64,000 bases of DNA from Oculina patagonica (Eukaryota). The notes beneath the pieces were generated by a model. That model searched no databases, was not told the origin of the DNA, and saw only the letters and a list, made by a program, of their open reading frames with translations. This document shows, one piece after another, positions 1-52,742 of this stretch; position 1 is the first letter of the stretch; every line of letters starts with the position of its first letter. The DNA is taken from contig NC_135761.1 of the NCBI RefSeq assembly GCF_052425735.1, positions 54,932,001-54,996,000 of the forward strand, read 5' to 3'. The position numbers and the translations under genes are program-made.

Positions 1-155
1 AAGTAAGTGGAAATTAAGCCAAAGATTTTAAGTTAAGAATTATTCAGCGAATGGTAGATTTGTGATACGTATTGCGCATGTTAAATTAAAAAAAGAACCA
101 GCTACAAGTTCCGACGGGCAACCACGAGGCCTACCCGTATGTTGTTTTTACTTAC

Positions 156-265
156 GCCGTTTGTACGTGGAATTGAGAACTGGACAGCTTCCTCTTCTTC
201 TTTCTTTGATGGCGTACGCGGTTCAGGAAGCTCTAGCTTGGGCACTGTCTGATTCCTCTCCAGAC
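156..265 (-). CDS. Exon following the EGF array (GLERNQTVPKLELPEPRTPSKKEEEAVQFSIPRTNG)
   Basis: tag|GT acceptor at 265, GGC|GTAAG donor at 156, open in the expected phase. Confidence 0.7.
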
Positions 266-18200: not shown

Positions 18201-21200
18201 GCAAAATATAAGAAGAGTTGGTAAGGTAAATGATGAGATGAAGCTAGGAAACATCTAATTAAAGCTACATCACTTATATCTCGAATGTTTCTGCAAAAAA
18301 AATTATAATACAATACTGGAATAGTTGCAAAAGTTCTGTGTCGCTCTGCAGTCACTAAATGATATAACAAGAAAGCAAACATTACTGCTGAAGTTATCAC
18401 AGTGAAATGTTTCTTAAATAACACGATACACGAAAACAAGTCAAACACAACCGTATTACGCACAACTGTAGTTTCCATTTTCCCACCCATGAGTTGAAGT
18501 ACGACTGTTTGAGTGTGTCGAGTACAACGATGAAGGTCTTTTTGAGCTAAGACACCTTCGAAACGTTTGCCGTTAAAGTATGAATGTCAAAAGTGCTAAA
18601 GGAAGGCAAATATGACTTACCCTGGACAAAACCAAGAAGTAGAAACACAAAATAAACTGTCCACATACTGTTGTTGAGGGACATCATTCACTTTGACGTA
18701 TTGTTTAATTTCGATTTCTTTAGGACATTATTATATCAGTTGTGCATGGATGGTCATATTCAGTGGGGCGTGATGCCTTTAGACAAAATTATGCGTCTAC
18801 TGTTTTATGCATCTTGGCTTCGTTGGATGAGCACTTAATCAGATAATTTACTTTTTTTCCTGAAACACGAAGGGACATGTCGCAGCGACATTTAGCAGGG
18901 ACAAAATCAAAACATGTTCATACACAAGAAAATGTAGCATGGGCGCGACGTGTTGCAGCGACACGTGCCCTCGTGTGTGGCAATACATTCCCGGAGGGTG
19001 TGCGCTGCAAAATGGCCCTTCTACGCTTTCTCCTGTTTGTTTATGCAATGATTTCGGCAAAGCAACAACATGTCATTGCAACATGTCCTTTCTCGTCTTA
19101 ATTGAGACGAGCGTCACTGAGACGCAGGTGCACCTTAGAAACAACTTGCCAGGTTTCATCCAGGCAGATTAAAGAGTCCCATTTTCCAGACGATGACACA
19201 TTTAAAATTTTCACCAGCAGGTTGACCAAAATCGGCTAATTTGTTGTTAAGCTTCAATAAGTTTCCCTTTTCACCGAAAACAATTATCAATGCAAAATCG
19301 TTGAATTATCGAGTTGTTTGTTAAGACTCATATCCGTACTACGACTTTAGTTCCTGATGCTTTTAAGCTATAAAATACTTTTATTCACTCTGTGATCCTA
19401 GAATTGAGAGATGTACTTTATTGAACTATTAACGATAATAACTAAACAAAGAGAAGAGTTTGCTAGAAACACGGTAGCAACCGACCGCTTTATCATTAAA
19501 ACAGTAATTGTTTTTTTTTTTTAGTTTAGATAGCAATCTCTTCCATAGATGATATTGGCCTAGGTATTGAATAGATTCAGTGGCCTTTCCACTTCACAGC
19601 ATGATATAAAAACCCTTAATTTTTCAGCATGTAGTTTATGTTAAATCTTTGACGTCTACATTCTGCCTGCACTAAGTTCCAAAAAATAAGAATACCTGAC
19701 CACCTATTTAAAGCTGGACTGATTTCTAATTTGTAAGTTTTCCCCTGCTCGTTTTTTAACCTTATAACTTTATCCCACTCTTGCATTTCCTTAACCTTTG
19801 TTTTGGTTTGTTTGCATGGTTACCTTGGTGACAGTTTCAAACATGTAATTAAATGAGTTAGAAAGCTTGACCAAATACACCAACCATCATGAAAAAATCA
19901 ATTAATTCATGCCACATTTCCAGTCAGTCCCTTTCTCTTTTTTTTAAAAAAAAAAATCACTGTAATTTGATTCAAGTAAATACATTGCCTTTAATAAACC
20001 AACATGGAGGCGGCTAATGTTATTACGTTTCGACAAATCTGTCAGAGTCAACTTGAGCTGATAATTCATGGAGGCTGGGCTTTGCCAAAAGAGACGCTTT
20101 GATTTCCATTTCAACAAAATAAGGAGGACAAAGGAAGACAGGTCTATCTATGAATTTAGAACTGATGATAATGGGAAATGGATTATTAGTGAAGTATGGG
20201 TCAGGGTTAAGTACAATGCAAACATACACGATTTATGGGCTGAAGGCCGGGCTTTGCCAAAAGGGCCCCCTTGATTTCCATTTCAATAAAATAAGGAGGA
20301 CAAACGCTGACAGGTCTGTCTATGAATTTAGAACTGATGATAAATGAAGGAAGAGTATAAGTGAAGTATATGTCAGGGTTAAGTACAAGTAGCCATGATT
20401 TATGGGCCATTGGGTTACTTGGGTAATGTGTGCTTTTGCTTCGTTTGCATTACAGTAGTGATTAAACTGAAAGGTTAGCCGACTCTGTCTGTAACCGTTG
20501 ACGGTGATACACAACGATCAATCGCATAAACTATTAGCATAGAAATGTTTTTATAACCGAGGTTTCACATTATTTAAATCAATAATAAATCTAACTTCTT
20601 TCCAATCATACTTGCCTAACCTCATTATACGTTTTGCTCTTGTAATTTTCCAAAACATAGCAAAATAAGAGTCTAGAACTGGAGTTATGTTGGCCAACAA
20701 GACGGTAATTTTTAATGTTTCGTTATGTTTCAATATTTGCAGAACATTCAGTCATATTGTTACTACTTCAGTCGCTGTATTTACTCCGTGACTCTGGAAT
20801 GAAGAATTGAGATCCCAAAAGATATTCAAGTAAATGAACACAGCATGGGTAACAGAGTTTGACAGAAAAGAGGCAGAATTATAGGCATAACACATCATAA
20901 TTACTGGTATATTTTTCATTAGCGATATTGCACCCTTTCCACCTCACAGGACGTGATACAATAACTCTTGATTAATCACCCTGCGGCTGCTGTCAGAAGT
21001 CTGGATCTTGCCGCACCCGAATTACTTCCAAAACTAGGGATGTCTGACCGCACAGTCCACTGCGATATGCTTTCTAAGATTTTTGTGTACGTTTCTACTC
21101 TTTTTTTTCTCTGTTTTTCGTCTAATTGAAAACAATTATCAGTCTAAGGTTAACAAAGATCACTGGTAATCATTGTTAACTGCGGCCGCCATTCTTTGCA

Positions 21201-24200
21201 GCTTTTTCTTTTACACACCTTTCTGTTGTGCTGACAATGCGTATTAGTACATCAGTTTTGCCTTATGAATGGCCCTCTTTATACCAGTGACACATGTTTC
21301 TGCTGTTGATTAAGCTATTAAGTTTAAAATAAAAACAACCAACAGCAAATAGATCGTCTTCACGCATAATCTGATCCATGTGGCTTCCTCTTTAAATATA
21401 TTAATTCTATCCATCTTGCGCTGTTCTTTATACTGAGACGCATACGAGTTCTTCTTGACTGATTATACGTATTACCATAGTCACTACTAACTGTGGTATT
21501 ACAGTAATAGAACGCTTCAACCACAACCAAAAACGATTATCAATTCAAGATTAAAAAGGATCATGCGAAACCTTTAAGAAATATTGAGTTGTTTATTAAG
21601 ATTCACGTCTAAACCAGACAATTTGAGTTGTTATTACTTTGAGACTTTAACTGTATGCAGCCGCCAAAGCCACCAAACATTCTTTGCAGGTTTCGTTCTG
21701 ACACAATATATACACTAGCTATCTGATGTGCTGACAATGTGTCGGAGCAACTAACATTCTTGATAAAAGCGTAAAATACAATAAAAAAGCTTCATATTCG
21801 TTGGATCTTACACCTGAATTGACTGGCTTTGCTTGGAAAGAAGTAGATTTTCCGAGTGGTCTGCGATAACGAAAAACCTCACTCCACAACCTACACCAAG
21901 CTTGCTCATGCCCAGAGCCCAAAACATTTCCACGAAATCCTAAAAAAAGACACTTTTCTGAACATGTCGACATGCACGACTTCTCTTCAAACATTTCCTT
22001 GTTATACAAATATAGGGTTTCTTTTACGGATATTTGTACAATAGAATTGAAATGATATCCACAATATCGATTGGAGGAAGAGACTATTTCCCGGTACGCT
22101 CATGGTTACACTATTTATTTTTCACTTGAACAAAAACACTTGAAGTAATGTAATTAAAACAGCTTTCGCGTAAACAAAATACGTAATATAAAAGCTTTAT
22201 ATAATTAATAAAGCAAAATATAAGAAGAGTTGGTAAGGTAAATGATGATGAGATGAAGTTAGGAAACATCTGTGAAAGCTACGTCACTTATATCTCGAAG
22301 TTTCTGCAAAAAAAATTAATACAATACTGGAATAGTTGCAAAAGTTCTGTGTCGCTGCAGCCACTGAATGATATAACAAGAAAGAAACATTATTGCTGAA
22401 GATATCACATGTGAAATGTTTGTTAAATAACACAACACACGAAAACAAGTCAAACACGCACAACTGTAGTTTTCATTTTTTACATTCATGAGTGAATGAG
22501 TTCGAGCGCGACTGCGTGCATGTGTCGAGTATAACGGTTAAGGTCCTTTTGAGCTAAGAAGCCTTCAAAACGTTTGCCGTTAAAGTATGAATCTCAAAAG
22601 GTGCTAAAGAAAGGCAAATATGACTTACCCTGGACGAAACCAAGAAGTAGAAACACGAAATAAACTGTCCACATACTGTTGTAGAGGGACATCACTTTAA
22701 CGTGTTGTTTAATTTCGATTTCTTTGGGACATTATTAAATCAGTTGGGCATGGATGGTCCTGGATATTCAGTGGGGCGTGATGCCTTTAGACAAAATTAT
22801 GCGTCTACTGTTTTATGCCCCTTGGCTTCTTTGGGGGAGCACTTAATCAGATAATGTGCCTTTTAATCCTGAAACACGAAGGGACATGTCGCAGCGACAT
22901 ATTTCAGGGACAAAATCACAACATGTTCATACACAAGAAAATGTAGCATGCACGTGTTGCAGCGACACGAGCCCTCGTGTGTGCTAATACATTTCAGGGG
23001 GCTTGCGGCTGCAACATGCCCCTGCTACATCTTCTTGTGTGTGTTTATGTAGTAACTTTGTCGCAACAACATGTCGCTGCAACATGTACTTTCGCCAAAT
23101 CCGTCTTTTTCTCATCTTACTTGAGGCGAAAGTCATTGAGACTCATAACGAGGTGCACTAAAAAAAAAACTTCAGGTTTCATCCAGGCGGACAAAGGTTC
23201 CGATTGTCCAAATGATGTCACATTAATTTTCAACAGCAGGTTGACAAAAATCGGCTTAGTTGTTGTTAAGCTTCTATCAGTTTCCCTTTTCACCGAAAAC
23301 TAGTTGGAAATCGTTGAAATATTGAGTTGTTTATTGAAAACTCATATCCTTATCTTTTCTATACGACTTCAGTTGCTGATGCTCTAAAGCTCTAAATACC
23401 AGTATTTACTCCGTGATCCTGGTATGAAGACATACACTTCATTGAAATCGTAAAGATAAAAACTAAACAAATAGAAGAGTTTGCTAGAATAATGGTAGAC
23501 CAACCCGCTTTATAACTAACCGTAATTGTTTTTTTACTTAAGATAGAATCTTTAATTGACGATATTGGCCTACAGTGTGGATATTGAATAGATTCAGTGA
23601 CCTTTCCACTTCACAACCTGATGTAATAACCCTTAATTTATCAACATGCGGTTTTTGTTAAATCTTTGACGTCAGTATTCTGCTGCACCAAGTTCCAAAA
23701 ATAAGAACTCTGCCCATGTTTGTCTGGGGGAATAATAGTTAAAGCGCGACTGATTTTTGAGAATTTTTGCGTACCTTTTTTCCTGCTCTCTTTTTAACCT
23801 TATAGACTATCTTTATTTCACTCTCACATTTCCGTAGCCATGTTTTGATGTGTTTTCATGGTTACCTTGGCAACAGTTTCAAAACATGTAATTAAACGAG
23901 TTAGAAGGCTTGAATTGACGGAGTAACCCAACCGTCATGATAAAGGGCCATTAATTCGTGCCACGTTTCCTGTCAGTCCCGTTCTTTAGAAAAAGATCAC
24001 TGTGACTTGATGGAGTAAATCATTGCCATATTTAATTACCTTCTGCCATATTGTGTGTTTCCAATGTAAACTTATTGTACCTATAACTTTTTGTTCACTT
24101 TTTTCGATTTCCACTTCATTAAAGCCTAATTATGCTTTAAACATATAGGTTATTTAATTTAATGTCTTAGCTCTGTTCTACTCTGCCACTGATTTTGTAA

Positions 24201-27200
24201 TTTCTTTGTAGTGGCAAAATAAATGAACTTGAAAACTTGCAACTTGAAATACTTTTGCATTTTTTGCATTAACAACCGAAAGCAATTATCAGTCCAAATA
24301 GTACTGAAAATATACACAATTTTCTAACCTGCTGACAGTGCATCTGAGCAGCTCAGCTGATTTTTGATGAAAGACAATTCCACAAAAGCCTGACGATTGA
24401 TGGTGCCATAAAACTTTCTGGCTTGGCTTGGAAAGAAGGAGATTTTGCCGAACATGCCGACTTGATCTCGCCTCAGTTTGAATACACAGTATTCCCGGCC
24501 ATGGAAATAAAAATGTTGCTTTCCGAAGCGGGCTTTTAAAAAAGAATGTTTTATGTAGGATTCACACTAAACCAAAAATGACTAAGAAAAATTCGACAGC
24601 TTTTCAGTATAACTACTATATCAAACCGGGTAAGAGTTTATATAGTAAATTATGGGGCGCTGGTGAAAGCTTTCTCTTTAAATCGAAAACGTAGCTGGCA
24701 AAATATCTAATCTATCAATCCCACATCCTTTCTCATATGCACCTAACTAAGAGTTACTAGTTAAGTTCCTTGTGTCGCTTATTGTTACTGAATATTGCAA
24801 CAACAAATTAAATTAAACGTTACTGCTGGAGCTATTACTGGTGGAATGTTGCTAAGTAACACGAAAACAAGTAAAAAAAAGTCAAACACGACGATTAGGA
24901 TCAACTACAACTTTCATTTTTCCATCCATGAATTCAAGCACGACTGCTTGCATGTTTCGAGTGCAACGGTCAAAGTCCTTGGAAAAAATACCTTGATCAT
25001 GTTTGCCGTTTGAGTACGAAGGCGAAAAAATTTATAAAGGAAGACAAATGTTACTTACCCTGGATGAAAACAGGAAGTAGAAACACAAAATAAACTGCCC
25101 GCATAATGCTGTAGAAGGACATTACTTTGGCTTGTTGTTTAATTTCTATTTTTTTGTTCATTATTAAATCAGTGTTGCATGAGTGGTCCTCTTCAGTGAT
25201 GCATAATCTGTTCAGATGAATCATCTGCTGTTGTATTAGTCTTGGCTTTCGGGCGCACTAAGCCCTTTTTTTTTAGTAAAATAACAGAGTCTACTTGGGG
25301 TATACAGAGCTGAGGTATATTTATTTATTACATTTAACATAAATTTCAAAATAGCTGGTAACAAGATTCCATGCTAATTGGCTATGAAATTCTGAGAAAC
25401 CAGGAACACAGTAGTTGAAAGGTCGTTTTCTTCGAAAGATTTAAGAGTGTTTCGAGAGTGTCATTCATGATCAGCTCTCAGACATTCAAGTTCACCAGAA
25501 ATAACTATTTTTTAATCAACTAGCACGTACATCTGAAAGCAATCCTTTTAATTTAACGACTAGGCAAAAAACATAAACAGTTTTCTAACAATTAAGTATA
25601 AGTAAAAAGGGAAACTGATTGAAGGTTATACACGAGCAAGTTAGCGACCCAGCTTTATTTGGGTCTGCAGTTTGATTATTAAAAATGTATGTGACAGGGA
25701 ATGCAGGCGATGAAAAAAACTGAGTTAAGAATATTCTGGATGAACTCAGGGATATGTTTTAAATAATGCACCTGGTTATAAAAATAAAAAGAAGAGAAGA
25801 AGATTATGCATCAAGACGAACTATGTGATTTGGAACGTAGCTTTAAGAGACCACTGCGGAGTATCTTGAGGGCGAGTATTTTAGCAACCGTATTTATTCA
25901 GGCGTCGCGTTTTGGTCAACTGCATGAGAACAGCACAGTCACTTGTACTGACATTCTGTTACGAAAAACAGACGCGTCTATTTTTTAGAACGTGCAGGAT
26001 TAAGTTCACTTGTACACATTTTATGTAGTTATCTACCATACAGAATACCGTCATTGTGGTGCTCTTGGCAGCACCCAGTCTAAGTTAGTGTGCCTTCTCT
26101 TCAGCCTGAAGCCGGTGAAAACCGATTTACAGCCTTCAAGTAAGTAACGAGTAGTTTACAACACGACAAGAACTTAAACTTAAAGTTATAATTGATGCAA
26201 TGATAATGAATAATACAAAAACGGGAAACGATCTCTCTTGAGTGAAACAGAACGCTGTTTGAGTACGAGCGTAAAATATTTTAGAGAAAGACTTACTTAC
26301 ATTACTTATCCTGGAAGAAAACAAGGAGTAGGAAAACAACGCCAACCGCTCGTTTTATGTCGAGTGACATTACTGCGCCGCGTTTTTTAGCTATCTGTGC
26401 AAACTTCTAACATCAACACGTTTTTCCAATTCGCGGAAAAATATCCTCTTTATTTTGGTCCACCTGACGTCATGCTATCGGGCAGAGTTGACACGAGCAA
26501 CAAACTTTACTGAGAACTTGAAAGCTTTATATAATAAACATATCAATCGTATGAACAGTTGATAATGCGTTTGCGGCTTCAAGACCAAACATGCCAACCA
26601 AAGCATCTTATCACAGCTACATCGAAATCTCGAAAGTTTCAGCGCCTCCTGGGATACGAAATCTTGGCTTGTGCAAAAAGCGCTTTCAGGTAACACTATT
26701 TGAGTTTCAAAACAACAGGAAAATGATTTTAGTATTGTGCAACAAATAAAGGACCACTTTAACTGAAAATAACGGCTTATAAAACGGGAGTAAAGAATCT
26801 TGTTCAAAACGGTTTACTACAATTTTTCTTATGAAGTTATCTGCCAAAATCTTGAACCGTATTCCGTAGACAATCATTTTCATTTAAAAAAAACGTCGCT
26901 TCTCTCACGTGCGCCTTTGATTCTGCCATAAGCACAAAGAATCATTTAAATCATCTTTTAAATTTTAGCTTTGCACAATAATTTTGGCTTTAGGTGTCAG
27001 GTTGGCTAAACAAAAATATTCCACGGTTATTTTAGCAACGTTTCAGGCAACATGTTACAAAACAAACTTATTATTAAAAGAAAAGGAATCATTATCGTCG
27101 TTTTAAAAATTTCAAGTCACGCCCATCGTCAAAGTACAAAGTACGCAATAAATCGAATTATTTATAGCTAAGGTAAAACAAACATTACAAAAAGCTATCT

Positions 27201-30200
27201 CATACTTATTCTTTAAGCAATAGACCGCGCTTTCTAGGGCTTTACTGGCGTAATAAAACCACGCGGGATGTTGGGAGAACACGAGAAAAGCTTGTAAATC
27301 TCGAGCCGCAGAGTGATTTACAAGCTTTTCGAGTGTTCTCCCAACATCCAAAGTGGTTTTATTACGCCAGTAAAGCCCTAGAAAGTGCGGTTTATTGCTT
27401 TTATGAAATTACTATAGAAAACTTTCGTCAAAGACATAGGAATCTATTTTATTTTTCGTGATCAAATGTCTTATTCTCAACAAGTTCATCGGATGACGCG
27501 GTAAACCAATCACAGCGGCTGAAAGAATAAAACACAGGTTCAGCTCCGCACACAAAACCCACGGATCGACGAGCAAAAACGTTCAAAAGTTGTCTTAAAG
27601 CTATAAAAGTCTTAAGAAAGGAAAGGAAAAATGCAAACTGACATAGTACGAAATGTATTCAACGATTCTTTGTTCTTTGACGTGGAAAACTAGCAAATTG
27701 TGGCCGGAGTCATTCATCGCGAAAGTGTGAGAGACTGCACGAAAACTTTGCAAGATTACAAACTTCGCAGACTGACGAAGGTATTGAGAATAAAGGTTAG
27801 TTTCACAAACTCTGCTTTAGAAATTTGTTATGATTTTATTTATTCCGTATTCTTTCGTTTTCGCCGAATAACAGACTTGGCAGAAAGCACTGAAAGCATA
27901 TAAAACTAAAATTATAATTCAAGCGCGAGGACTCAGCGTAAGTTTCTGCCATCAAAATAATTCAAGTAAGCTTTCATTGCGACCAATTTGATGCAGTTTT
28001 AATTCCTTTCAAATAACATTTCCGAGTAAATGTTGATTGGAACGATATCCATGTTTTTAATATTTTCCAGTCCGATAAAAGCCGACCTGTTTATAATGTT
28101 TCTTCTCATATGTTTTTCTCCGCGTTTTCGTTTTTTTTCTCTAGTTACTTCGCTCCATATGTGGCGAGTGGGAAAATTTGTTTTTGTGATCCACCCTCAG
28201 TAAATTTTCACATTGAGAACCATATTCTCCGTTTTAACAATCAGATAGACCAAAAGAAGATATTAAACTAACGTTAATTCTTCGTCCTTATGGCTTATGC
28301 GTAATCGAGCGCAGTGCGACCATGTCGGCACGGAAGCGGGAGTTTACCGGTACAATAGTACATAGGTTTTTTGAACAATTTGACCAATCAGAGCGCGCGT
28401 AGTATCTGAGTTATTTTATAAAATCCGATAAAGTTCTGAAAAGCATAGGAGTTCATCTTGTTAGATGTAAACAGGAAATTCCACAGCAAACTGGGGGAGC
28501 TGTATTACAAAGACATTTTAACTAAATTACGTAATTGCAAGAAGAGAAACAAATATTTGCCGGAATTTTTACTGAATCACAAATTATTATCTGTAGATGT
28601 GGTCAATAAAGTATAAAAAATTTGACGTAAGATGCGAAACAAAATTAAAAGTGAGCTGGACTGCGAAGACGATATGGACATGCCCAAAGAATTTAATATA
28701 AACACGAACAATTAAAATTGATCACTTTATCTTTGTACTAAGTTGCATGATTCATAAACAACGGAGAACAACATACCGGGAGATGGAGACACACTGCTGG
28801 ATGAAAACACGCTGAAACTGCTGCTGCTTGAGCTTGAAGGAACACTGAAACTGCTGCTGCTTGAGCTTGAAGGTAAACTGTAACTGCTGCTGCTTGAGCT
28901 TGAAGGAACACTGAAACTGCTGCTGCTGCTTGAGCTTGAAGTCAGACTGAAACTGCTGCTGCTTGAGCTTGAAGGCAAACTGTTACTGCTGCTGCTGCTT
29001 GAGCTTGAAGGTAGACTAAAACTGCTGCTGCTTGAACTTGAAGACACACTGAAACTGCTGCTGCTTGAGCTTGAAGACACACTGTAACTGCTGCTGCTTA
29101 AGCTTGAAGATAGACTGAAACTGCTGCTGCTTGAGCTTGAAGGTAGACTGAAACTGCTGCTGCTTGAGCTTGGAGACAAACTGAAACTGCTGCTGCTTGA
29201 GCTTGAAGGCAAACTGTAACTGCTGCTGCTTGAGCTTGAAGGAACACTGAAACTGTTGCTGCTTGAGCTTGAAGACACACTGAAGCTGCTGCTGCTTGAG
29301 CTTGAAGATACACTGAAACTGCTGCTGCTTGAGCTTGGAGACAAACCGAAACTGCTGCTGCTTGAGCTTGAAGTCAAACTGAAACTGCTACTAATTGAGC
29401 TTGAAGGAAGACTGAAACTGCTGCTGCTTGAGCTTGGAGACAAACTGAAACTGCTGCTGCTTGAGCTTGAAGGTACACTGAAACTGCTGCTGCTTGAGCT
29501 CGAAGGCAAACTGTAACTGCTAATGCTTGAGCTTGAAGGCAAACTATAACTGCTGCTGTTTGAGCTTGAAGACAAACTGTAACTGCTGCTGCCTGAGCTT
29601 GAAGGTGAAATGAAACTGCCGCTGCTTGAGCTTGAAGGAACACTGTAACTGCTAATGCTTGAGCTTGAAGGCAAACTGTAACTGCTAATGCTTGAGCTTG
29701 AAGGCAAACTATAACTGCTGCTGCTTGAGCTTGAAGGCAAACTGGAACTGCTGCTGCTTGAGCTTGAAGGTGAACTGAAACTGCCGCTGCTTGAGCTTGA
29801 AGGAACACTGTAACTGCTAATGCTTGAGCTTGAAGGTAAACTGTAACTGCTGCTGCTTGTACTTGGACACACACATAAACTGCTACTGCTTGAGCTTGAA
29901 GGCAAATTATAACTGCTGCTGCTTGAGCTTGAAGGCAAACTGTAACTGCTGCTGCTTGAGCTTGAAGGTAAACTGTAACTGCTGCTGCTTGAGCTTGAAG
30001 GCAAATTATAACTGCTGCTGCTTGAGCTTGAAGGTAAACTGTAACTGCTGCTGCTTGAGCTTGAAGGTAAACTGAAACTGCTGCTGCTTGAACTTGAAGG
30101 CAAACTGAAACTGCTGCTGCTTGTACTTGGACACACACATAAACCGCTACTGCTTGAGCTTGAAGGTAAACTGTAACTGCTGCTGCTTGAGCTTGAAAGC

Positions 30201-33200
30201 AAACTGTAACTGCTGCTGCTTGAACTTGAAGGCAAACTGTAACTGCTGCTGCTTGAGCTTGAAGGCAAACTGAAACTGCTGCTGCTTGAACTTGGACACA
30301 CACATAAACTGCTACTGCTTGAGCTTGAAGAAAAACTGAAACTGCGGCTGCTTGAACTTGAAGGCAGACTGAAACTGCTACTGCTTGAACTTGGACACAC
30401 ACATAAATTGTTGCTGCTTGAAGTTGGAGAAACACTGAAACTGCTGCTGCTCGAAGTTGGGGACACACTGAAACTGCTACTGCTTGAGCTTGGACACACA
30501 CATAAACTGCTGCTGCTTGAACTTGAAGGCAGACTGAAACTGCTACTGCTTGAACTTGGACACACACATAAACTGCTGCTGCTTGAAGTTGGAGACACAC
30601 TAAAACTGCTGCTGCTTGAACTTGAAGGTAAACTGAAACTGCTACTGCTTGAGCTTAAAGGCAGACTGAAACTGCTACTGCTTGAGCTCGGACAGACACA
30701 TAAACTGCTGCTGCTCGAAGTTGGGGACACACTGAAACTGCCGCTGCTTGAACTTGACGACACACTGTAACTACTACTGCTTGAACTTGGAGACACACTG
30801 AAACTGCTACTGCTTGAACTTGGACACACACATAAGCTGCTGCTGATTGAGCTTGGAGACACACTAAAACTGCTGCTGCTCGAAGTTGGGGACACACTAT
30901 AACTGCTGCTGCTTGAACTTGTAGGCACACTGTAACTGCTACTGCTTGAACTTGGACACAGACATAAACTGCTTCTGCTTGAACTTTGGAACACACTGAA
31001 ACTACTGCTGCTTGAGCTTGAAGACAAACTGAAACTGCTGCTGCTTGAACTTGGTGACAAACTGAAACTGCTACTGCTTGAACTTGGACACACACATAAA
31101 CTGCTACTGGGTGAACTTGCAGACACACTGAAACTGCTGCTGCTTGAGCTTGAAGACCAACTGTAACTGCTACTGCTTGATCTTGAGGAATGACTGAAAC
31201 TGCTACTGCTTGAAGTTGGAGACACACTGGAACTGCTACTGCTTGAGCTTGGAGACCAACTGTAACTGCTACTGCTTGAACTTGAGGAGTGACTGAAACT
31301 GCTACTGCTTAAACTTGTAGACGGACTGAAACTGCTACTGCTTGAAGTTGGAGACACACTGGAACTGCTACTGCTTGAGCTTGGAGACCAACTGTAACTG
31401 CTACTGCTTGAACTTGAGGAGTGACTGAAACTGCTACTGCTTAAACTTGTAGACGGACTGAAACTGCTACTGCTTGAAGTTGGAGACACACTGGAACTGC
31501 TACTGCTTGAGCTTGGAGACCAACTGTAACTGCTACTGCTTGAACTTGAGGAGTGACTGAAACTGCTACTGCTTAAACTTGTAGACGGACTGAAACTGCT
31601 ACTGCTTGAAGTTGGAGACACACTGAAACTGCTACTGCTTGAACTTGGACACAAACATAAACTGCTACTGCTTGTGCTGGAAGACAAACTGAAACTGCTG
31701 CTGCTTGAACTTGGAGATAAACTTAAACTGCTGCTGCTGCTGCTTGAACTTGGACACACACATAAACTGCTGCACTGTAGAGCTGTGGAGCAAAGGTTTC
31801 TCTCCAGTTATACATTGACCGAAAACTTGACTGCTATGCTAGTTGTTTTTCATTTCTGGTATTTCGGGGTACGACTTTAAATTTGAATGGGTTGCTGTAG
31901 TGTTTTAGTTTGTTATTAACAACGCCCAGAGAGCGTTTAAGATTGTCGTGGTCTAAAGCGATAATTTTACACATCCCCTTTACAAGGACTACGCGTACCG
32001 TGACTTGCCCTCCATCTGGTTGTAGTTTATGCAGTCCCATGTAAACTGACCCCAAATGTTTCCACGCACAACTCAGGGTAACTTAGACATTGTTTAAACA
32101 ATCGGCCTCATAAATTCTGTGTCCATGTATTTCGTTTTTAATTCGTATTTTGATTGCAATAAAATCATTTTTGAACATTTTAATCCGATTGATAAACAGC
32201 AACTATTTGGAAGTTCGAGTTAAATATATAAATTCTGGCTGCTTACATTCGTCAAGTGCTCTCGTCAGCTGAGGGGCAATCGAGAAAAGTGACTAAAACA
32301 TTGTCTTTGAAAAGCAGTCAAGTCATAAAAATAATTCTAAATGCTGTCAATGTCGAGTAAATGACAAAAAAAAAACAATAACAAGCCAATGATTCGCCTC
32401 TCCAGTTGATCAACCCAGATAACTAATTAGATAACTAATTTAATCCATCAGACTCGTATTCTTTGTTTCACTACCTTTTGTACTACTAATGTTAAACGAA
32501 CAAATAAAAGGGAAGCACGGAAATGAGAAAAAACAAAATCTTTGTCGCTGACAGACCGAAGGCATCACGCCTGTGATGATCAACGAGCCGACAGTCGCAC
32601 CGAGTGACCCACCGAGCAAATTGGAATCCACAATCGATTGAAAATAACCGCCGAAAAGACGAAAGCACGGGTGAGAAGGGAGCGCGTGGCGCGCGCGGAC
32701 GAACAAACCGACAAACGGGCCCCAAACGCAAAGACGCAAATGTGCAAGAACGAAGTGTGAAAAGCAAAATGGTGAGTGGAGGGCCACGCCCCAGCGCGAC
32801 GAGGGACGGCACCCCGGGGGAGCCAAGATCCAGGGACGGACGGGGGGCCAAATTGGGGGAACCAAGATCACTGCGACACCGCATTCTTAATATAAACACG
32901 CTATGGCCATACGTATTCTTACAACAGTTACGGTGGTTAGCGTGGATAAATAATCAATTTTTCCTTTGTATTTTGGTGACAGTAGGGAAACTCCTTTGCG
33001 AACGTATATTATTCGATTCATTCAAGAAACAAATTGAAATTTGCCTCAAATAAAGTTTGGTTGTTTACATCAGTGCATTGCGAGCATTTGTGAACATTTC
33101 AACGAGTTATATTAGGCTTGACTAATAAACTGACAATCAATTTTGAGTCTGTTTTCTTGATCTTTTTTTAAATACTGAGCAGATTTTAGAATGTTGCGTT

Positions 33201-34254
33201 GTCTATGAACAGGTCCATTTAATTCGGCCTATTGAAGTTGTTTCGACTTATATAACAAGAGCTGCCATTCGTGTGAACCGTTAGTCTTGCCACAATATGC
33301 ATGGTTCAAGTAATTAGCTGGTTATTGTTTTCTTCTTTATTTTTTAATTAATCCATTTTCACTGCGCAATATATAATCCACCCATACCCTTTCTTTTGGT
33401 AGACCTTTGGAAAGTAATGAAATATTCAGTGCAAGGTTGCAATGTGTTAAACATGCTTACAGGATTACTAATTACTTATCGGTCGACATAATACTTATGA
33501 TGTTTATCAAAGAACTGCGTTGTTGTGAATCGCTTCTTTGTGACGTTATGTGCCTTAAGAAAAATACTGTGGTAGCCGGTAGTCTTTATAGCAACAGTCA
33601 GTGTTAATCAGGAATCAACAACCTATTCCAACTTGAAGCGGGTAATGAGCGGTTTTTATTTTCTACGCCATATAAGATTAATTACATTGTTAGCAACAAG
33701 CGGCACGCCAATCATTAGGAGATCAGTTGCACAAATACATGTTCACTGCCATTCGTGAGATTTCGTTAAAGCGATTTCTGTTAAGCATTACTCTAGCAAC
33801 ATACTAAACGAATGTAGAGTTGATATGGTGAGTTATAACCGCCATAACATGAAATGTCTCTTATTCTTATAAGACCAATCATAACCAAAGCGGTAAATAG
33901 AACGTTAGAATAGCTGCTCTTGCATAAATAGATGAAAGCACTACCAAGTCTCAAAGTCACTGCCTAAGCTCATATATAAATCGGTTTTTAACAAATTATG
34001 TAACAATTAAGAAATCAAACATTGATGTCAAACGCGACATACCGCAGTTCGTATTTTTGTTTTAACATCACAAATTGTTAGCAGTGTTTATCTCGAACTT
34101 TCTATTTCGTGAAAAATGCTGTGACACAATGCCATATATATGACCATGGTTGAAAAACAAAAATGCTTAAAGAAGGAAAATATCGCTTACCTTGGAAGAA
34201 ACTAGCGAGTAGAAGCACAAACCAAGCTGTGCCAATATTGTTGTGGAGGGACAT
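156..34254 (-). CDS. MUC4-like / mucin-like protein (signal peptide, Ser-rich mucin region, NIDO, AMOP, VWD, EGF repeats), multi-exon, 3' end outside the window
   Basis: Manually joined GT-AG exons with consistent phases: a 64-nt leader (e.g. 34191-34254 or 18621-18684), [28777-31782], 16488-16652, 15785-16036, 14140-15483, 13162-13191, 13033-13056, 12175-12335, 11355-11729, 10632-10732, 10038-10130, 8460-9040, 7941-8162, 7188-7526, 6506-6760, 5829-6022, 4266-4602, 3528-3659, 2801-2923, 2203-2325, 1872-2000, 954-1082, 156-265. In-window length is 1761 codons without, or 2763 with, the large exon. Motifs: IAPFW and NTFQAVIITDG (NIDO), QECCY..GSL..GPPDGG (AMOP), WGDPH and GLLGTWNDDPDDDF (VWD), DIDEC (Ca-binding EGF). 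Confidence 0.9.
954..3659 (-). CDS. Five phase-1 EGF-domain exons (3528-3659, 2801-2923, 2203-2325, 1872-2000, 954-1082)
   Basis: Each is 123-132 nt with six-Cys EGF spacing; four begin D(I/V)(D/N)EC; canonical splice sites. Confidence 0.9.
1272..1798. mobile_element. Tc1/mariner-type MITE
   Basis: TIR CAGTCGAAGCTCTC...GAGAGCTTCGACTG flanked by TA; internal CGTAAGCGG subrepeats. Confidence 0.85.
3926..4200 (+). mobile_element. tRNA-derived SINE
   Basis: A box TGGCCGAGTGG, B-box-like GGTTCAAGAC, non-tRNA body, AT-rich (TTTTTA)n tail. Confidence 0.75.
4266..4602 (-). CDS. Exon encoding the end of a cadherin-like/beta segment and two EGF-like modules
   Basis: FVATDDKGASA..CACDHGGQC..CACQGGYTGRFCDSDIDAC..CGPCPSGYTGNGAQC; cag|TTC acceptor and G|GTGAG donor. 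Confidence 0.9.
5829..8162 (-). CDS. VWD domain and following exons (7941-8162, 7188-7526, 6506-6760, 5829-6022)
   Basis: WFWGDPHIKTLDNGNYTFNGLGEY; KGLLGTWNDDPDDDF; CGDDHECLFD; NFPPKI. Confidence 0.9.
8460..9040 (-). CDS. End of NIDO plus AMOP domain exon
   Basis: ACPCTMWQAWLDWGRF, QECCYST, YKYCC, YRPSDDCSRYIPP; canonical splice sites. Confidence 0.9.
9141..9355 (+). mobile_element. Solo LTR
   Basis: TGTAG...CTACA ends, 4-bp TSD TATG on both sides, internal TATAA and ATTAAA. Confidence 0.75.
10038..12335 (-). CDS. NIDO-region exons (12175-12335, 11355-11729, 10632-10732, 10038-10130)
   Basis: MYPYG..GFPFF..LY|ICRNGLI..IAPFWATTD..WVLVVTW..|SNTFQAVIITDG..AGWNAGD. Confidence 0.9.
11047..11336. 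repeat. Interspersed repeat; further copies at about 40297-40565 and 46890-47178
   Basis: Shared GTGTTTCATC..GAGTTGAAAAT..GATGAAACACTGTCTC..ATGAGTTTGAGAA. Confidence 0.8.
12613..12844. mobile_element. MITE, PIF/Harbinger-like
   Basis: TIR AGCCTGGTTTTCACTAGCG...CGCTAGTGAAAACCAGGCT. Confidence 0.8.
13033..13191 (-). CDS. Two phase-1 microexons (30 nt at 13162-13191; 24 nt at 13033-13056), Thr/Pro linker
   Basis: ccttag|CT..GCG G|GTAAG and ttttcag|TT..ACG A|GTGAG; both lengths are multiples of 3. Confidence 0.65.
13335..13968. repeat. Pentanucleotide microsatellites (GCCAT)n, (GGGCT)n, (AGGCT)n spanning two N gaps
   Basis: Directly visible. Confidence 0.95.
14140..15483 (-). CDS. Ser/Thr-rich mucin exon with about 11 tandem 28-aa (84-bp) repeats
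   Basis: Unit such as SSASSQVASESNFFSQTQSSTPSSTTTS; tttcag|CG acceptor, A|GTAAG donor; 1344 nt, phase 1-1. Confidence 0.88.
15785..16036 (-). CDS. Ser-rich exon with MCVCPC and VCYCLC Cys clusters
   Basis: ttctag|CA acceptor, T|GTAAG donor; 252 nt, phase 1-1. Confidence 0.85.
16488..16652 (-). CDS. Ser-rich exon with MCICPC and VCYCPC Cys clusters (paralog of 15785-16036)
   Basis: ttttcag|CA acceptor, T|GTAAG donor; 165 nt, phase 1-1. Confidence 0.85.
17995..18172 (+). mobile_element. Non-LTR retrotransposon ORF2 fragment (Tx1/L1-like)
   Basis: FYQDWVDKGALTLQDVIDNNGRYLPFEQFKQRYGIQCNFLQYFQVIS resembles the region C-terminal to the RT domain. Confidence 0.6.
18621..18684 (-). CDS. Signal-peptide first exon, copy 1 (MSLNNSMWTVYFVFLLLGFVQ)
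   Basis: ATG...CAG G|GTAAG, 64 nt, hydrophobic core. Confidence 0.8.
22629..22692 (-). CDS. Signal-peptide first exon, copy 2 (MSLYNSMWTVYFVFLLLGFVQ)
   Basis: ATG...CAG G|GTAAG, 64 nt. Confidence 0.75.
25059..25122 (-). CDS. Signal-peptide first exon, copy 3 (MSFYSIMRAVYFVFLLPVFIQ)
   Basis: ATG...CAG G|GTAAG, 64 nt. Confidence 0.7.
26310..26370 (-). pseudogene. Signal-peptide exon, copy 4 (MSLDIKRAVGVVFLLLVFFQ), donor mutated
   Basis: 61 nt, homologous to the other copies, but ends CAG G|ATAAGT (GT to AT); read-through hits TAA two codons later. Confidence 0.6.
27210..28422. mobile_element. Interspersed element with a terminal hairpin of about 185 bp (27217-27400)
   Basis: GCAATAGACCGCGCTTTCTAGGGCTTTACTGGCG inverted to CGCCAGTAAAGCCCTAGAAAGTGCGGTTTATTGC; right boundary approximate. 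Confidence 0.55.
28777..31782 (-). CDS. Large 1002-codon poly-Ser exon built from 33-bp (11-aa) repeats with 12 LC(V/L)CP motifs
   Basis: Uninterrupted ORF; ccacag|CT CTA CAG TGC acceptor, CCC G|GTATGT donor; 3006 nt, phase 1-1. Confidence 0.85.
34191..34254 (-). CDS. Signal-peptide first exon, copy 5 (MSLHNNIGTAWFVLLLASFFQ)
   Basis: ATG...CAA G|GTAAG, 64 nt; nearest leader upstream of the large exon. Confidence 0.8.
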
Positions 34255-39644: not shown

Positions 39645-39709
39645 CTTGGAAAAAAACCAGCGAGTTGAAACACGAAACAAGCTACGCGCATATTGCTGTG
39701 AAGGAACAT
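39645..39709 (-). pseudogene. Signal-peptide exon, copy 6 (MFLHSNMRVACFVFQLAGFF..), +1 frameshift
   Basis: 65 nt: T7 run where copy 8 has T6, giving phase 2; could be a homopolymer sequencing error. Confidence 0.6.
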
Positions 39710-40605: not shown

Positions 40606-40724
40606 TTATTTGAGCACAGACTTTTCCGTAAGTTTATTTTCGAGATTCTCTGCGATGCACCTTCTGCTCGCGCAGTAAAAAGGCACTTGTATGAACTCAT
40701 GGATTGTCGTGAGGTGCCGTAGAG
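40606..40724 (-). CDS. Candidate short terminal exon behind a duplicated acceptor (ALRHLTTIHEFIQVPFYCASRRCIAENLENKLTEKSVLK*)
   Basis: gtcag|CT CTA acceptor and upstream intron match those of the large exon at 31782; 1-nt deletion relative to the 47.3-kb copy. Confidence 0.35.
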
Positions 40725-41151
40725 CTGACTAGCAACGTTTTCTCTCCAGTAACCTTTTTTCATACAGTGACCAAAAAATTGAATGACTTGCTAGTTGTTT
40801 TTTCATTTCTGGTATTTCAGATACGAATTGAAATTTCAGTGGGTTACTAAGTTCGCAAGAGGCTGTAGTGTGTCGATTACAGATTATTAGTAGAAACTCA
40901 GCCGTGTTCTATTCAAAATCCACGAATCTGATTGGTTCTCCAACTGTTTTCTATTCGCTGATAGAAAACGATCGCGCGCTCGTTGCTCATTAAAAGATTA
41001 ATTTTTCTTCATTTTTGGCTTATAAGTACGTAAAATTGTAGGTTTTTGGACTGCAGTCCTTTAAGAGTTTCTACTAAAACAATTACACTACTCGCCCTCG
41101 TTTTCTATGAGCAATAGTCAACTCGGCTGCGCCTTGTTGACTATTTGCTCA

Positions 41152-41186
<35 letters not shown>

Positions 41187-43212: not shown

Positions 43213-43276
43213 CTTGGAAGAAACCAGCAAGTAGAAACACAAACCAAGCTGCGCGCATATTGTTGTGAAGGGACAT
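43213..43276 (-). CDS. Signal-peptide first exon, copy 7 (MSLHNNMRAAWFVFLLAGFFQ)
   Basis: ATG...CAA G|GTAAG, 64 nt. Confidence 0.75.
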
Positions 43277-45140: not shown

Positions 45141-45204
45141 CTTGGAAAAAACCAGCGAGTTGAAGCACGAAACAAGCAACGCGCATATTGCTGTGAAGGA
45201 ACAT
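45141..45204 (-). CDS. Signal-peptide first exon, copy 8 (MFLHSNMRVACFVLQLAGFFQ)
   Basis: ATG...CAA G|GTAAG, 64 nt; Gln in the hydrophobic core. Confidence 0.65.
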
Positions 45205-45951
45205 TACTGCATGGTTTGATTCACTGACATATATTCTAGGCTATCGGTGTGTCACCCTTGAAAGCGAGCAAATTAGCTTCGCGATTTGCAATTATTAGTC
45301 TCGCATGAAATACATATCGCTCTTAGGTCCTCTAAGCACTGGCTACTTCGTTAACTCTAAGTAGCAGTAAAGAATAACGGTAGTCCCAAATAAAGCCGAT
45401 TTGTCGAGATGTAAACTTTAGCTGGTATCTTTTTTCAATCAATACCACAATCTTGGAAAGATCTTTCATTAGTTTATTTGTCTTTCAGTGAAAGTTTTTA
45501 CTTTAAATGTTTAAAACTAGTTATTTATGAGTTTATTGTTTGAAAACGGATGACGCACGTTCGCTTTCAAAGAGAAAAACCTTTGCCCCGATCTATTTAT
45601 AGCAATTTGATTTATACGGCAACTAATTTGTTTAGTTCATTACCTGAACGCAAGATCTTGAAGTGCGTTTGACTGAGCACTTGAATATCTAGCTAATATA
45701 AGAACATTTACCAAATGCGGAGTTTCCTTTGAATGAATTCCTTGCCCTCAGTTTCTAATATTGCGTTGAGTACAGTAAAATTTCGATGAGAAGATGGGCT
45801 TAAATTTATTTGAAAGCTTTGCTGGAGTCATTTTCCGGAGTGGGTGAGGGCGTGGAGTCGGGGGAGGTTGCAAGATGTAAGTCGGGTGCATGTGTGGGTG
45901 GGGGCAGTATTTTTTTTTTGGGGGGGGGGGGGGTAGTATATATTAATTTAA

Positions 45952-46500: not shown

Positions 46501-47191
46501 TTAAGAGCTAAATCTAACTGATAAGCTCGTACACTTCTATTCTTGAGGAGAGGGCTCCTTAAAAAGACGAATTTTAGCTTATGAAATTCGAAAAGGGAGG
46601 GGGTTATCTTGGGGAGGGCATTGCTTGGAACAAATCGATAACTGACCGAGAATCGATATTCTCAGATAGTACGGTCGCGAGCAAGCTTGGTTAATAACAG
46701 ATATGTTATATGATTCTATTACTAGAAATGAGCCGTAGTGGCTTTACCCGGTCCAATACTGATACCAATATTGGGCCAGCAATAAAGCGTTCTTATTGGC
46801 TGATTTATGTTATTGACCCACTCAGCACACTTGTGCAATAAAATGGCACACTGTCTGAGTGCTTAGTAGACAAAAACACAACTGGAAGTAATATATCAAA
46901 CACTAATAACAGTGTTTCATCGGGATATCCAAACACCGAGAAGGGAGTTGAAAATGCGACGCACAGCGGAGTATTTTTGACGAAATTCGAGATGTTTGGA
47001 AGCCGATGAAACACTGTCTCAATGTTGATATATCTTCTCAATCGAAACAAAAACTACGGAGAAAATGGAGGAATAAAATCGTAAATATCTATGCTAATTA
47101 AGACCGGGTATCAAAACCTTCTTCACGGTTTTAATTTTCTTTGTTTTAACTTGATAAATTACTAATGAGTTTGAGAATATGTGATAAAGAC

Positions 47192-47337
47192 TCATTCAAA
47201 CGAGGTCGGCTTAGGACTAATTTGGGCACAGACTTTTCCGTAAGTTTGTTTTTGAGATTCTCTGCGATGCACCTTCTGCTTGCGCAGTAGAGAAGTCATT
47301 TGTATAGGCTCATGGATTGTCGTGGGGCGCTGTAGAG
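47192..47337 (-). CDS. Candidate short terminal exon behind a duplicated acceptor (ALQRPTTIHEPIQMTSLLRKQKVHRRESQKQTYGKVCAQISPKPTSFE*)
   Basis: ctccag|CT CTA CAG matches the start of the large exon; phase compatible with the leader exons. Confidence 0.4.
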
Positions 47338-47741
47338 CTGGAGAGCAGCATTTTTTTTTTCTCCCGGAACGTTTTTCCATACATTGACCCCAAAATTGAA
47401 TGTCTTACTAGTAGTTTTTTCAATTCTGGCATTTCAGGTATAAATTTACAGGGTCTACTTGAACTGTGGCTTATCCACAATAATACAATTCAGCCTCCGC
47501 CTGGTTGTTGTTTACGCAGTCCCGTGTAAACCCAAATTCTTCCACAATTTAAGTAAAAATTGGACCCTGTTTAAATATTCGGCTCAATAGATTCTAATAA
47601 TAATAATAATAATAGATAGTTTATTCATATTTCTACATGACAGTCTAAAACTGAATTGCGTAAAAATTTACAAAGAGATAAATTATTAAAAATACAACTG
47701 TTAAAATCTATTATAGCTACATTAAAAATTTGCCATAGAGG

Positions 47742-49077: not shown

Positions 49078-49330
49078 CCATAGAGGGGAAAAAGCTATGT
49101 TTAAAACGATTGGTTCGAGCCTTATATGCTTGAAAATGACATTGACTTCTTAAGTTATACGTATTTACATTTTCCTGTGGTAAGAACTTATGTAATTTGT
49201 GGCTACTATCGAGCATGATCTTATTGAAGAGTTTCTTGCACAGGATAGAACGTCTTTCCTTTAGGGAGCTTAGATTACAACATGATAGGTTATCCTGATA
49301 TGATGCGTGTGGATCGATAATAAATAGCGC

Positions 49331-50712: not shown

Positions 50713-52678
50713 ATAGCGCGCGTTTCTGTACACGTTTTATATCGTCGCTTAGGTAAGTGGGAAGGCTATGGTGAAAAGCCGGCGCGCAATACTCTAGAAC
50801 TGGTCTTATGCATGTACAATAGACGTCAAGAATGACCTTTTTTGAGACACCAGCTCTTTTCAGTAATTTGAGATGACATTCTATTTTCCTATATATATCG
50901 TTTTTATTTTATTTTTTGTTTTTTTGGTTGCAGTAAAAATCCTTGGTGAAACATTTTAATCCAATCAATAAACAGTAATTATTTGATAAGTACTGTATTG
51001 ACGTTTGCCTCAAATATATACATTTTGGTTGTTTACATTAGTACATCTGGCCCATTATAATCCTCCCTCGGGGTAAAGGCACTAAGACAAGACATAAGTG
51101 GGTCATTAGACTGTTCCAGGCTCATTAGTACATTCGTTAAGTACATTCGTCAAGTGTTTTCACCAGCTGAGGGGCAAACTAGAAAATGACAATAAGTGAA
51201 AATGCTAAATTAAAATAACGAGTCAATCACAAAAAACAATAAGTTGATGATTCAGCTCGGCAGTTGATCGACCAAGATGATAAGTTTCTTTATTGCGCGT
51301 TCTTTTTATAAACACGCTATCGCTATATTTATGCCCACAACGATTACGGCTGCTAATGTGGATAAACAGTCGGCTTTTCCTTTGTATTTTGGTGACAGCA
51401 GTAAAACCTTTTTTTGTGAACTTGTTTAATCAAGTTAAGTAACAGTAATTTGAATATACAATATCAAAAATTGTCTGAGATGAAGTTAGGTTGTTTATAA
51501 TAATGCATTGCCAGCAATTTAGAACATTTCAACGAGTCATAAGGCTTGACCAATTACTCAACTGTCCATCAGTTTTGAACCTATTTTCTTGCTCTTCTTT
51601 CTAAATATTTAGCAAATTTTGAAATGTTGCGCTGTCTTGGATGAACTGAAAATGTTTCGACTTCGAATTTATTAAAACCTGAGTCGCTATTTAGTCTTGC
51701 CATAGTACGCATGCTTCGAGATGTAAGCTAGCCACTTCCAATCGACTCTTACGCTGTCTTGTTATTTCCTTTCATTGGCCTTTGAAAATGAAATATTTAG
51801 TAAAAGGTTGCTGAAAGATTAAGTCTGGGAAACGATCTGTCGAGAAATACATGGAACATGCTTCACTGAAATATTGTAAACTAATGGGTCAAGAAAATAT
51901 TTCTGATGGTTATCAGAGAATTGCATTGTTGTGAATTCCTTCTTGTGACGGTATGTGCCTTATGAAAAATACTGTGGTTGCTGTAGTCTTGGCAACAGTC
52001 GGTGCTATTAACGATAGTGTCTTCCAACTTGAAGCGAGTAAAGGCCGGTTTCCAGTCTCTACGCTGTATAATACTAATCATATTGTTAGTAAGATACGGA
52101 AGACCCGTACTGAAGAGTACTGAAGAGCGAGCACAAATGCAATTCTCTTTGCCAGCTGTCAGATGACGTCAAAGTGGTTTCCAATTCGTTGAACAAATTC
52201 TTACAATTCTGGAGCACTTGACGCAATGAAATCAAGAACTTATCATGAAAACAACACTGATTTGTAATGCTTTACTTAAACAACATATTCAACGAATTAA
52301 GAGTTGATATGGTGACTTATTAGACCGCCATGGGAATGTTTCTTCTGCTTTTAGATCAATCATACTCAGCCAATACGGAAAATAGAGGGTTCAAATTGTT
52401 TTTGCACAAATAGATATAACACGACCAAGTCTATCAAAATGACTGCTTACGTTCATATATCTGCTGTTATTTCATAACATAACAATTAAGAAATCAAACA
52501 CTGAGGTCATTATTGTTGAACAAACGCGAGATATCTACTGCATTTCTTATTTTTGTTTCAATGTCACGAGTTGTTGTAACAATGTGATGCGAGCTTTCTC
52601 TTGCGTGAAAAATGCTGTGACGCAGTGCTTTATCAGTATGGGTGCACAAAGTGCTAACGGAAAGCAAATAACACTTAC

Positions 52679-52742
52679 CTTGGAAGAAACCAGCGAGTAA
52701 AAGCACAAACCAAGCTGTGCGCATATTGGTGTGAAGGGACAT
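52679..52742 (-). CDS. Signal-peptide first exon, copy 9 (MSLHTNMRTAWFVLLLAGFFQ)
   Basis: ATG...CAA G|GTAAG, 64 nt; matches the start of ORF 52494..52742. Confidence 0.75.

Follow-up and report, generated by a model that had tools for sequence, protein, structure and literature searches.

Tandem signal-peptide first exons, probably arranged in two banks, at a mucin-like gene of Oculina patagonica

The window analysed here, a stretch of 64,000 nucleotides (nt) of Oculina patagonica DNA (NCBI RefSeq assembly GCF_052425735.1, contig NC_135761.1, positions 54,932,001 to 54,996,000 of the forward strand), carries on its minus strand a mucin-like gene and nine homologous copies of a short leader exon, each named below by its lower coordinate in the window. 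The arrangement is probably that of a gene with two banks of alternative first exons, built by nested tandem duplication. Such duplication would have multiplied the 5′ end of the gene, comprising the core promoter, a 64-nt signal-peptide exon and the start of intron 1. The leaders of a proximal bank (18621, 22629, 25059 and the dead copy 26310) lie between a serine-rich repeat exon (the poly-Ser exon) and exon 2, and would splice straight to the exon 2 acceptor at 16652 to give a short precursor. Those of a distal bank (34191, 43213 and 52679, the apparently decaying 45141 and the dead 39645) lie upstream of the poly-Ser exon and would reach exon 2 through it. Given these positions, a proximal start would give a precursor without the poly-Ser block and a distal start, most simply at 34191, one with a block of 1,002 residues. 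Leaders within a bank differ in signal peptide only, so that choice among them would alter regulation only, while choice between banks would alter the protein. An earlier, sequence-only reading of this DNA had held that the variable part is nothing but the cleaved leader, a claim now abandoned, as choice of bank would add a 1,002-codon exon to the mature protein or omit it. Probably two to four leaders are live, the others being spare or decaying duplicates.

Transcript evidence for the joining of a leader and of the poly-Ser exon to the gene body

Contigs of four RNA runs, including those referred to as X1 and X2, were aligned to positions 15,700-21,699, and junctions were taken from these assembled contigs. 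RNA depth in this interval was found on exons and a few transposon-like pieces and was zero over introns in all four runs, which argues that the contigs derive from RNA and not from DNA carry-over. In one X1 contig, of word depth 15.8, leader 18621 is spliced directly to acceptor 16652 on the minus strand across 1,968 nt with GT..AG ends, which shows leader 18621 to be live. A second X1 contig (depth 5.9) runs from exon 2 to 16652/3 and continues into 30 letters that match 28778-28807 at 28 of 30 positions, the 3′ end of the poly-Ser exon. Further downstream, an X2 contig joins the exon 2 donor at 16488 to the exon 3 acceptor at 16036, and its loose end at 15454-15483 leads to the next acceptor, at 15483. 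The two joints into 16652 support the proposal that the leaders serve as first exons of a single mucin-like gene.

The poly-Ser exon is an exon of this same gene, because RNA joins 28777 to 16652, all of the exons concerned are of phase 1-1, and the frames are open both from leader through exons 2 and 3 to the large serine/threonine-rich exon and from leader through the poly-Ser exon to exon 2 and onward. Its uptake is possible only for transcripts that start upstream of 31782. The joining of the poly-Ser donor to 16652 consequently calls for a leader from the distal bank, of which 34191, with a frame open through 31782 to 16652, is presumed to be the start of the long isoform. A weak hint of transcription exists for another distal copy, 43213: when its first exon was used as a query (98 nt), two of six copy-specific words of 31 nt (31-mers) were present in RNA run X2, in which intron coverage was zero.

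Mapping of junctions into 16652, which had been suggested as a check of the array, gave 18621-16652 and 28777-16652 as the only forms in the X1 contigs; none from 22629 or 25059 was present there, a weak negative, as assembled contigs drop rare variants. The notion of a promoter-choice array therefore stands in part, more than one 5′ route being in use, and does not extend to a nine- or seven-way array, with one leader having a direct junction and two being dead. No leader-bearing protein fragments were found with the open reading frame (ORF) around 52679, scored on 40 amino acids (no candidate shared three words), Logan RNA contigs breaking at splice branches and being too short for proteins. 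A degenerate leader pattern had no match in JGI metagenome contigs. About one fifth of the words sampled from 4,000-12,500 were present in RNA runs, which is about what is expected for the exons of the gene.

Leader copies, their duplication and the surrounding features

Direct reading places nine homologous leader exons on the minus strand between 18.6 and 52.7 kilobases (kb) of the window, and an nhmmer search with a profile of the seven intact copies returned exactly nine matches in the 64 kb (E values of 5e-25 to 5e-9), with no tenth copy. The intact copies (18621, 22629, 25059, 34191, 43213, 45141 and 52679) are each exactly 64 nt in length, read ATG...CA(A/G)G^GTAAG (the caret marking an exon boundary) in phase 1, and encode 21 amino acids with a hydrophobic core. 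The Kyte-Doolittle mean of the core over 11 amino acids is 2.2-3.3 in all leader copies. Signal peptides are expected to have a short n-region, a hydrophobic core of 7-15 residues and small residues at positions -1 and -3 of the cleavage site; the junction of leader and exon 2 reads V-Q-A^T, and the cleavage site likely falls at this exon junction (...Q-A). Upstream DNA (75 to ~550 nt) and the start of the intron are homologous among copies, each carrying its own, with TATA-like motifs in the upstream DNA and additionally CCAAT in 34191, 43213 and 52679. The sequence-only reading was accurate in having described nine minus-strand leaders at these places, seven of exactly 64 nt with these boundaries, and each in its own duplicated block with its own upstream DNA.

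Alignment and tree separate two leader families, of which family I consists of 18621, 22629 and 25059, with 26310 as a long-branch remnant, and family II, set on a long separate branch, consists of 34191, the pair 43213/52679 and the pair 45141/39645. Across families the exons can be aligned gap-free, with 69-80% identity, whereas the flanks are alignable only within a family. Self-comparison of the window pairs 50878-52988 with 41397-43512 (85% identity), 46912-47446 with 40298-40829 (87%) and 43744-45794 with 38205-40284 (91%), so that a unit of A leader, stub and B leader is present in two copies, after which come 34191 and the complete poly-Ser exon. The stubs, at 40724 and 47337, share with the 31782 acceptor ~115 nt of homologous intron and ~8 nt of exon, beyond which lies a repeat also present at 11041-11335, and their pyrimidine tracts are poor, with 6/20 and 8/20 pyrimidines respectively, that of 31782 itself being modest at 9/20. 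They appear to be scars, by-products of duplications that had one edge a little way into the poly-Ser exon, and not working entry points. Both had been proposed as acceptors for the leaders, a role that does not fit exon homology of ~8 nt followed by unrelated DNA with stops; the accompanying claim that the 5′ acceptors are all of phase 1 is correct for 16652 and 31782.

A homologous locus of O. patagonica (L001; CM126638.1, 43.97 Mb), either the orthologue or a paralogue of the window locus, offers a comparison. GenBank model P0209 of this species begins MSLYNSMRAIYFVFLLPAFIQ, a family I leader, and uses one of two intact 64-nt leaders that lie 1.2 kb apart at L001 (Lo1, 10001-10064, and Lo2, 11167-11230). 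Neither the poly-Ser exon nor the family II leaders have a counterpart at L001. The exon 3 counterpart there (11900-12100) is a decayed piece with stops (...YACYCLWPSN*FNCLHVM) beside a G-rich insertion, the CxCPCG exons having been lost at L001 and kept in the window. The L001 leaders are preceded, at a distance of 2.7 kb, by the end of an unrelated BTB/Kelch gene, whose counterpart is absent from the window by tblastx, including the 11 kb beyond the last leader, and upstream synteny is not kept. Tandem intact leaders recur in this gene family under either relation, and the large distal bank and the poly-Ser exon are specific to the window locus. Were L001 the orthologue, these two features would represent a gain or a loss confined to one lineage.

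Rates of change differ among the leader copies. A comparison with 250-nt flanks overstated flank divergence at the ends of duplicated blocks, and the analysis was redone on homologous blocks only. Old copies of family I are 9-16% divergent in the exon versus 26-35% in the flanks (p 0.0001-0.05), the exons being two to three times better conserved: exon and flank divergence are 9% and 31-35% between 25059 and Lo1 (Fisher p < 0.0001) and 14% and ~30% between 22629 and 25059 (p = 0.013). For the young pairs the values are 5% versus 5-13% (18621/22629), 8% (5/64 differences) versus 10-12% (43213/52679) and 3% versus 6-9% (39645/45141). The B lineage (45141/39645) differs from other family II copies by 16-20% in the exon and 18-27% in the flanks, has lost CCAAT, and diverges at the flank rate; it appears to be decaying. 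The suggested comparison of exon and flank rates thus bears out constraint for the old family I copies and not for the young pairs or the B lineage. Counted as parsimony events, indels in the exons number 1 observed versus 6.25 expected from the flanks (P = 0.014), a depletion only mildly beyond chance, much of which two or more functional lineages alone would give; the earlier statement that length and frame are kept against flank indels is upheld to that mild degree, two copies being broken. An argument from the ratio of non-synonymous to synonymous rates (dN/dS) was dropped, as 21 codons provide too few sites.

Table 1. Leader exons, stub acceptors and gene exons in the window, listed from the distal end of the array
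Feature	Position	Strand	Leader	Remarks
Leader II-A1	52679..52742	-	MSLHTNMRTAWFVLLLAGFFQ	Intact (64 nt); copy farthest from exon 2; donor AAG^GTAAGT; sister of 43213
Stub acceptor 47337	47193..47438	-		Truncated duplicate of the acceptor at 31782, running into unrelated repeat DNA; frame closed by a stop after 48 codons; 46912-47446 is 85% identical to 11041-11335
Leader II-B1	45141..45204	-	MFLHSNMRVACFVLQLAGFFQ	Formally intact, apparently decaying: 46 nt inserted ahead of the ATG, CCAAT mutated to CCAGT, Gln within the hydrophobic core, exon diverging at flank rate
Leader II-A2	43213..43276	-	MSLHNNMRAAWFVFLLAGFFQ	Intact; weak hint of transcription (2/6 copy-specific 31-mers in RNA run X2)
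Stub acceptor 40724	40606..40848	-		Another truncated duplicate of the acceptor at 31782, its tract rich in purines (6/20 pyrimidines); frame closed by a stop after 39 codons
Leader II-B2	39645..39709	-		Dead: 65 nt, frameshift by one added T giving an in-frame stop; 97% identical to 45141
Leader II-C	34191..34254	-	MSLHNNIGTAWFVLLLASFFQ	Intact, donor AAG^GTAAGC; closest leader upstream of the poly-Ser exon
Poly-Ser exon	28777..31782	-		3,006 nt, 1,002 codons, phase 1-1; 33-nt unit repeated ~89 times; donor site CCG^GTATGT (28777)
Leader remnant	26310..26370	-		Dead: 61 nt (3 nt lost), donor GT changed to AT (AGG^ATAAGT); weakest profile match, 32 bits
Leader I	25059..25122	-	MSFYSIMRAVYFVFLLPVFIQ	Intact old copy; shares LLP.FIQ with Oculina leader Lo1; exon conserved far above flanks
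Leader I	22629..22692	-	MSLYNSMWTVYFVFLLLGFVQ	Intact; young duplicate of 18621 (3/64 differences)
Leader I	18621..18684	-	MSLNNSMWTVYFVFLLLGFVQ	Intact; use shown by splice to 16652 in an X1 RNA contig
Exon 2	16488..16652	-		165 nt, phase 1-1, Ser-rich with CxCPCG motifs; acceptor common to both routes
Exon 3	15785..16036	-		252 nt, phase 1-1, paralogue of exon 2; joined by RNA to exon 2 and 15483
Large Ser/Thr-rich exon	14130..15483	-		12 copies of an 81-nt (27-amino-acid) repeat; 3′ end approximate
Constant exons	141..12349	-		NIDO, AMOP-like, VWD, C8-3_MUC4, EGF/cEGF (Pfam; tblastn of P0111)

The repeats of the poly-Ser exon (28808-31738) encode 11 amino acids each at 83% identity and are punctuated by L-C-(V/L)-C-P, and the motif L/M-C-x-C-P is common to the poly-Ser exon and exons 2 and 3. 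Dense O-glycosylation or phosphorylation can take place on poly-Ser blocks. Exons 2 and 3 also carry the motifs S-M-C-(I/V)-C-P-C-G and V-C-Y-C, and mucin-like models of Stylophora carry C-E-C-P-C-G. At 15777-15813, a 128-nt X1 contig extends beyond the exon 3 donor by 8 nt and goes on with 90 letters found nowhere in the window, which may represent another allele, an alternative donor leading to an outside exon, or a chimera. The repeat of the large exon (14388-15361, minus strand), with the unit SESxFFSQTQSSTPSxTTTS... at 84% identity and no indels, is a classic mucin-type tandem repeat.

Pfam searches of minus-strand ORFs below 12.4 kb identified NIDO (2e-14), VWD (1e-6 and 2e-7), C8-3_MUC4 (5e-16) and EGF_CA/FXa_inhibition (1e-6 to 2e-9). 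AMOP scored 16.7 bits, below the cut-off of 25, in an exon that is 82% identical to the AMOP region of the O. patagonica protein P0111. The order of NIDO, AMOP and VWD followed by EGF repeats, behind a Ser/Thr-rich region, is a MUC4-like architecture, and a single downstream set of these exons is present, as had been claimed. The closest annotated protein is the 'mucin-like protein' of O. patagonica (P0111/P0209), with 67-94% amino acid identity per exon by tblastn. Alignment of P0111 indicates that the gene extends past the low end of the window, its transmembrane end lying outside. An annotated protein of the window itself was not found by searches using A. palmata and O. patagonica homologues.

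Inside the array no other recognisable gene was identified, Pfam giving no family for ten ORFs between and beyond the leaders, with stretches resembling transposable elements at 48-51 kb, 32-33 kb and 54-58 kb. Between leaders 34191 and 39645 lies a pair of inverted repeats (35319-35585 and 36684-36948; 267 nt, 96% identical, 1.1 kb apart), likely a terminal inverted repeat transposon. A short repeat is present in three copies, at 10975-11335, 40196-40565 and 46808-47177, which are 85-87% identical and probably belong to a non-autonomous transposon, one situated in a gene-body intron and two directly after the stub acceptors. Two further elements represent transposon families shared with L001: one of 1.2 kb (27209-28424), on the immediate downstream side of the poly-Ser exon, is 82% identical to L001 41002-42156, in an intron of a neighbouring gene, and 1269-1804 is 93% identical to L001 21213-21756, in a non-corresponding intron. 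A short tandem repeat at 56302-56807, with units of ~50 nt at 76-78% identity, also matches L001 29827-30342. Past the distal end of the array, an ORF at 57783-58301 (minus strand) contains MGNCFSGC..., a myristoylation-like start, and then a basic Ser-rich region, with no Pfam match.

Alternative explanations

Several observations weigh against a gene with two banks of first exons. Both junctions at 16652 come from short contigs (95 and 105 nt) of the single run X1, and a contig across 16652 is absent in the other three RNA runs. No joint of a distal leader to 31782 was seen, the contigs having been aligned to the proximal interval, and distal use would follow from the poly-Ser joint. The support for 43213 consists of two sampled words. 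The young pairs are without significant exon constraint (pooled, 5.2% in the exon versus 9.3% in 250-nt flanks, p = 0.077), and substitutions in the leader exons are mostly non-synonymous. Mostly non-synonymous change is usual for signal peptides. Neutral debris, with 18621 alone of importance, the other copies and the distal bank inert and the second junction mere splicing noise, would account for the similar exon and flank divergence of the young pairs, for the non-synonymous changes and for the dead copies and truncated stubs. It is nevertheless very unlikely, given that the depth of the second junction reaches one third of that at the first, that an open frame of 3,006 nt through ~89 repeat units is unexpected for inert DNA, and that the exons of old copies are far better conserved than their flanks. 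Smaller still is the chance of an inflated or mis-joined repeat in the assembly: tandem repeats and transposon-like DNA abound in the region, but a collapsed or inflated assembly is unlikely because the copies differ pairwise by 3-30%, there is no assembly gap between 18 and 53 kb, and the 31-mers specific to 43213, unique in the window, were present in DNA runs of at least three studies (6/6 sampled).

Selection might instead have kept all seven intact leaders as live, separately regulated promoters in the manner of protocadherins or UGT1A, with a variable part that would in essence be regulatory. Retention of ATG, 64-nt length, frame and a strong GTAAG donor in seven copies is consistent with this, as are the depletion of exon indels, the clear constraint on 25059 and the two L001 leaders, the copy-specific 31-mers of 43213 in RNA, and the CCAAT and TATA-like motifs kept upstream of 34191, 43213 and 52679. 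An array in full use is doubtful, however, when a junction is available for one leader only and X1 shows no forms at 16652 besides 18621 and poly-Ser, when the young pairs and the B lineage change at the flank rate and two copies are dead, when distal leaders would have to skip the stub acceptors, and when the homologous locus has two leaders only and leader-bearing protein fragments were not found. The locus may also comprise two genes, the distal leaders and poly-Ser exon forming a separate secreted poly-Ser gene and the 28777-16652 joint reflecting occasional read-through splicing of conjoined genes. The unspliced poly-Ser frame does reach a stop 16 codons past 28777, with ATTAAA 80 nt downstream of the donor, at 28697; family II stands on its long separate branch, and at L001, with no family II or poly-Ser counterpart, an unrelated gene lies 2.7 kb upstream. 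What makes this improbable is that the 28777-16652 joint is canonical and in frame, that the poly-Ser exon is exactly of phase 1-1 like exons 2 and 3 and has the L/M-C-x-C-P motif in common with them, and that the poly-Ser contig accounts for ~27% of the summed depth of both X1 contigs at 16652, above a trace. One gene with two banks, of which 18621 is observed in use and a distal leader is implied by the poly-Ser joint, is accordingly preferred.

Comparison with known systems

PCDH, UGT1 and GCNT2 have the established arrangement of tandem variable first exons that splice to constant exons (PMC1885805). The window locus resembles these clusters in its tandem homologous first exons with their own upstream DNA and a donor without an acceptor, in its shared downstream exons, in its origin by tandem duplication and in its dead members. 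In those clusters, however, the variable exon is a large diversified functional domain, whereas the exon here encodes 21 amino acids, signal-peptide-like and ending at the junction, and not a diversified part of the mature protein. The protein change would here come from a separate poly-Ser exon between the banks, and the use of most members is putative. Were all seven intact leaders live, the locus would be a cnidarian counterpart of the vertebrate variable-first-exon clusters, in a mucin of skeletal-matrix type. A comparable cnidarian array was not found in full-text literature searches, which is weak evidence of absence. The principle of multiple first exons is already known, and what gives the locus its value is the example together with the gated poly-Ser exon.

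If use of the banks is as the RNA contigs indicate, the choice of transcription start would decide whether one and the same adhesive or matrix mucin is made with or without a very long poly-Ser block. Bank choice would switch an almost uncharged module of 1,002 residues in or out of the secreted protein, a concrete handle on how mucus or skeletal-matrix properties could be adjusted between tissues, life stages or stress states. Were all seven intact leaders live, within-bank choice would in addition tune tissue, stage or dose and leave the mature protein unaltered. With live, spare, decaying and dead copies, stub-acceptor scars and a two-leader homologous locus for comparison, the locus may illustrate what a variable-first-exon cluster looks like early in its formation.

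Within a bank, the nearer parallel is IGF1, whose leader exons 1 and 2 are described as mutually exclusive, with their own promoters and alternative signal peptides and an unchanged mature protein, which suggests a regulatory role (PMC3607797). Within-bank choice would likewise change the signal peptide alone, as judged from sequence; the parallel fails between banks, where the distal route would add 1,002 residues. IGF1 has two unrelated leader exons and no cassette exon gated by a leader, in contrast to the bank of recent homologous duplicates here. In protein architecture, the gene is like vertebrate MUC4 and the mucin-like skeletal organic matrix protein (SOMP) B3EWY9 of Acropora millepora, which has nidogen-like, AMOP, VWD and EGF domains and is of a kind present in coral skeletal proteomes (PMC3748352), with the same C-terminal domains following a Ser/Thr-rich region; the closest match in Acropora is only 57% identical in the AMOP region. 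A leader array and a 1,002-residue poly-Ser exon are not among the features given in PMC3748352, and the window gene is likened to B3EWY9 by its sequence and not by skeletal location. The multiplication of a unit of promoter and signal peptide by repeat-mediated duplication, as suggested here, has a precedent in a gene family of Schistosoma japonicum whose members have a promoter and signal-sequence module in common (PMC3434034); the copies there are dispersed and head different genes, whereas those in the window are in tandem and would head one gene.

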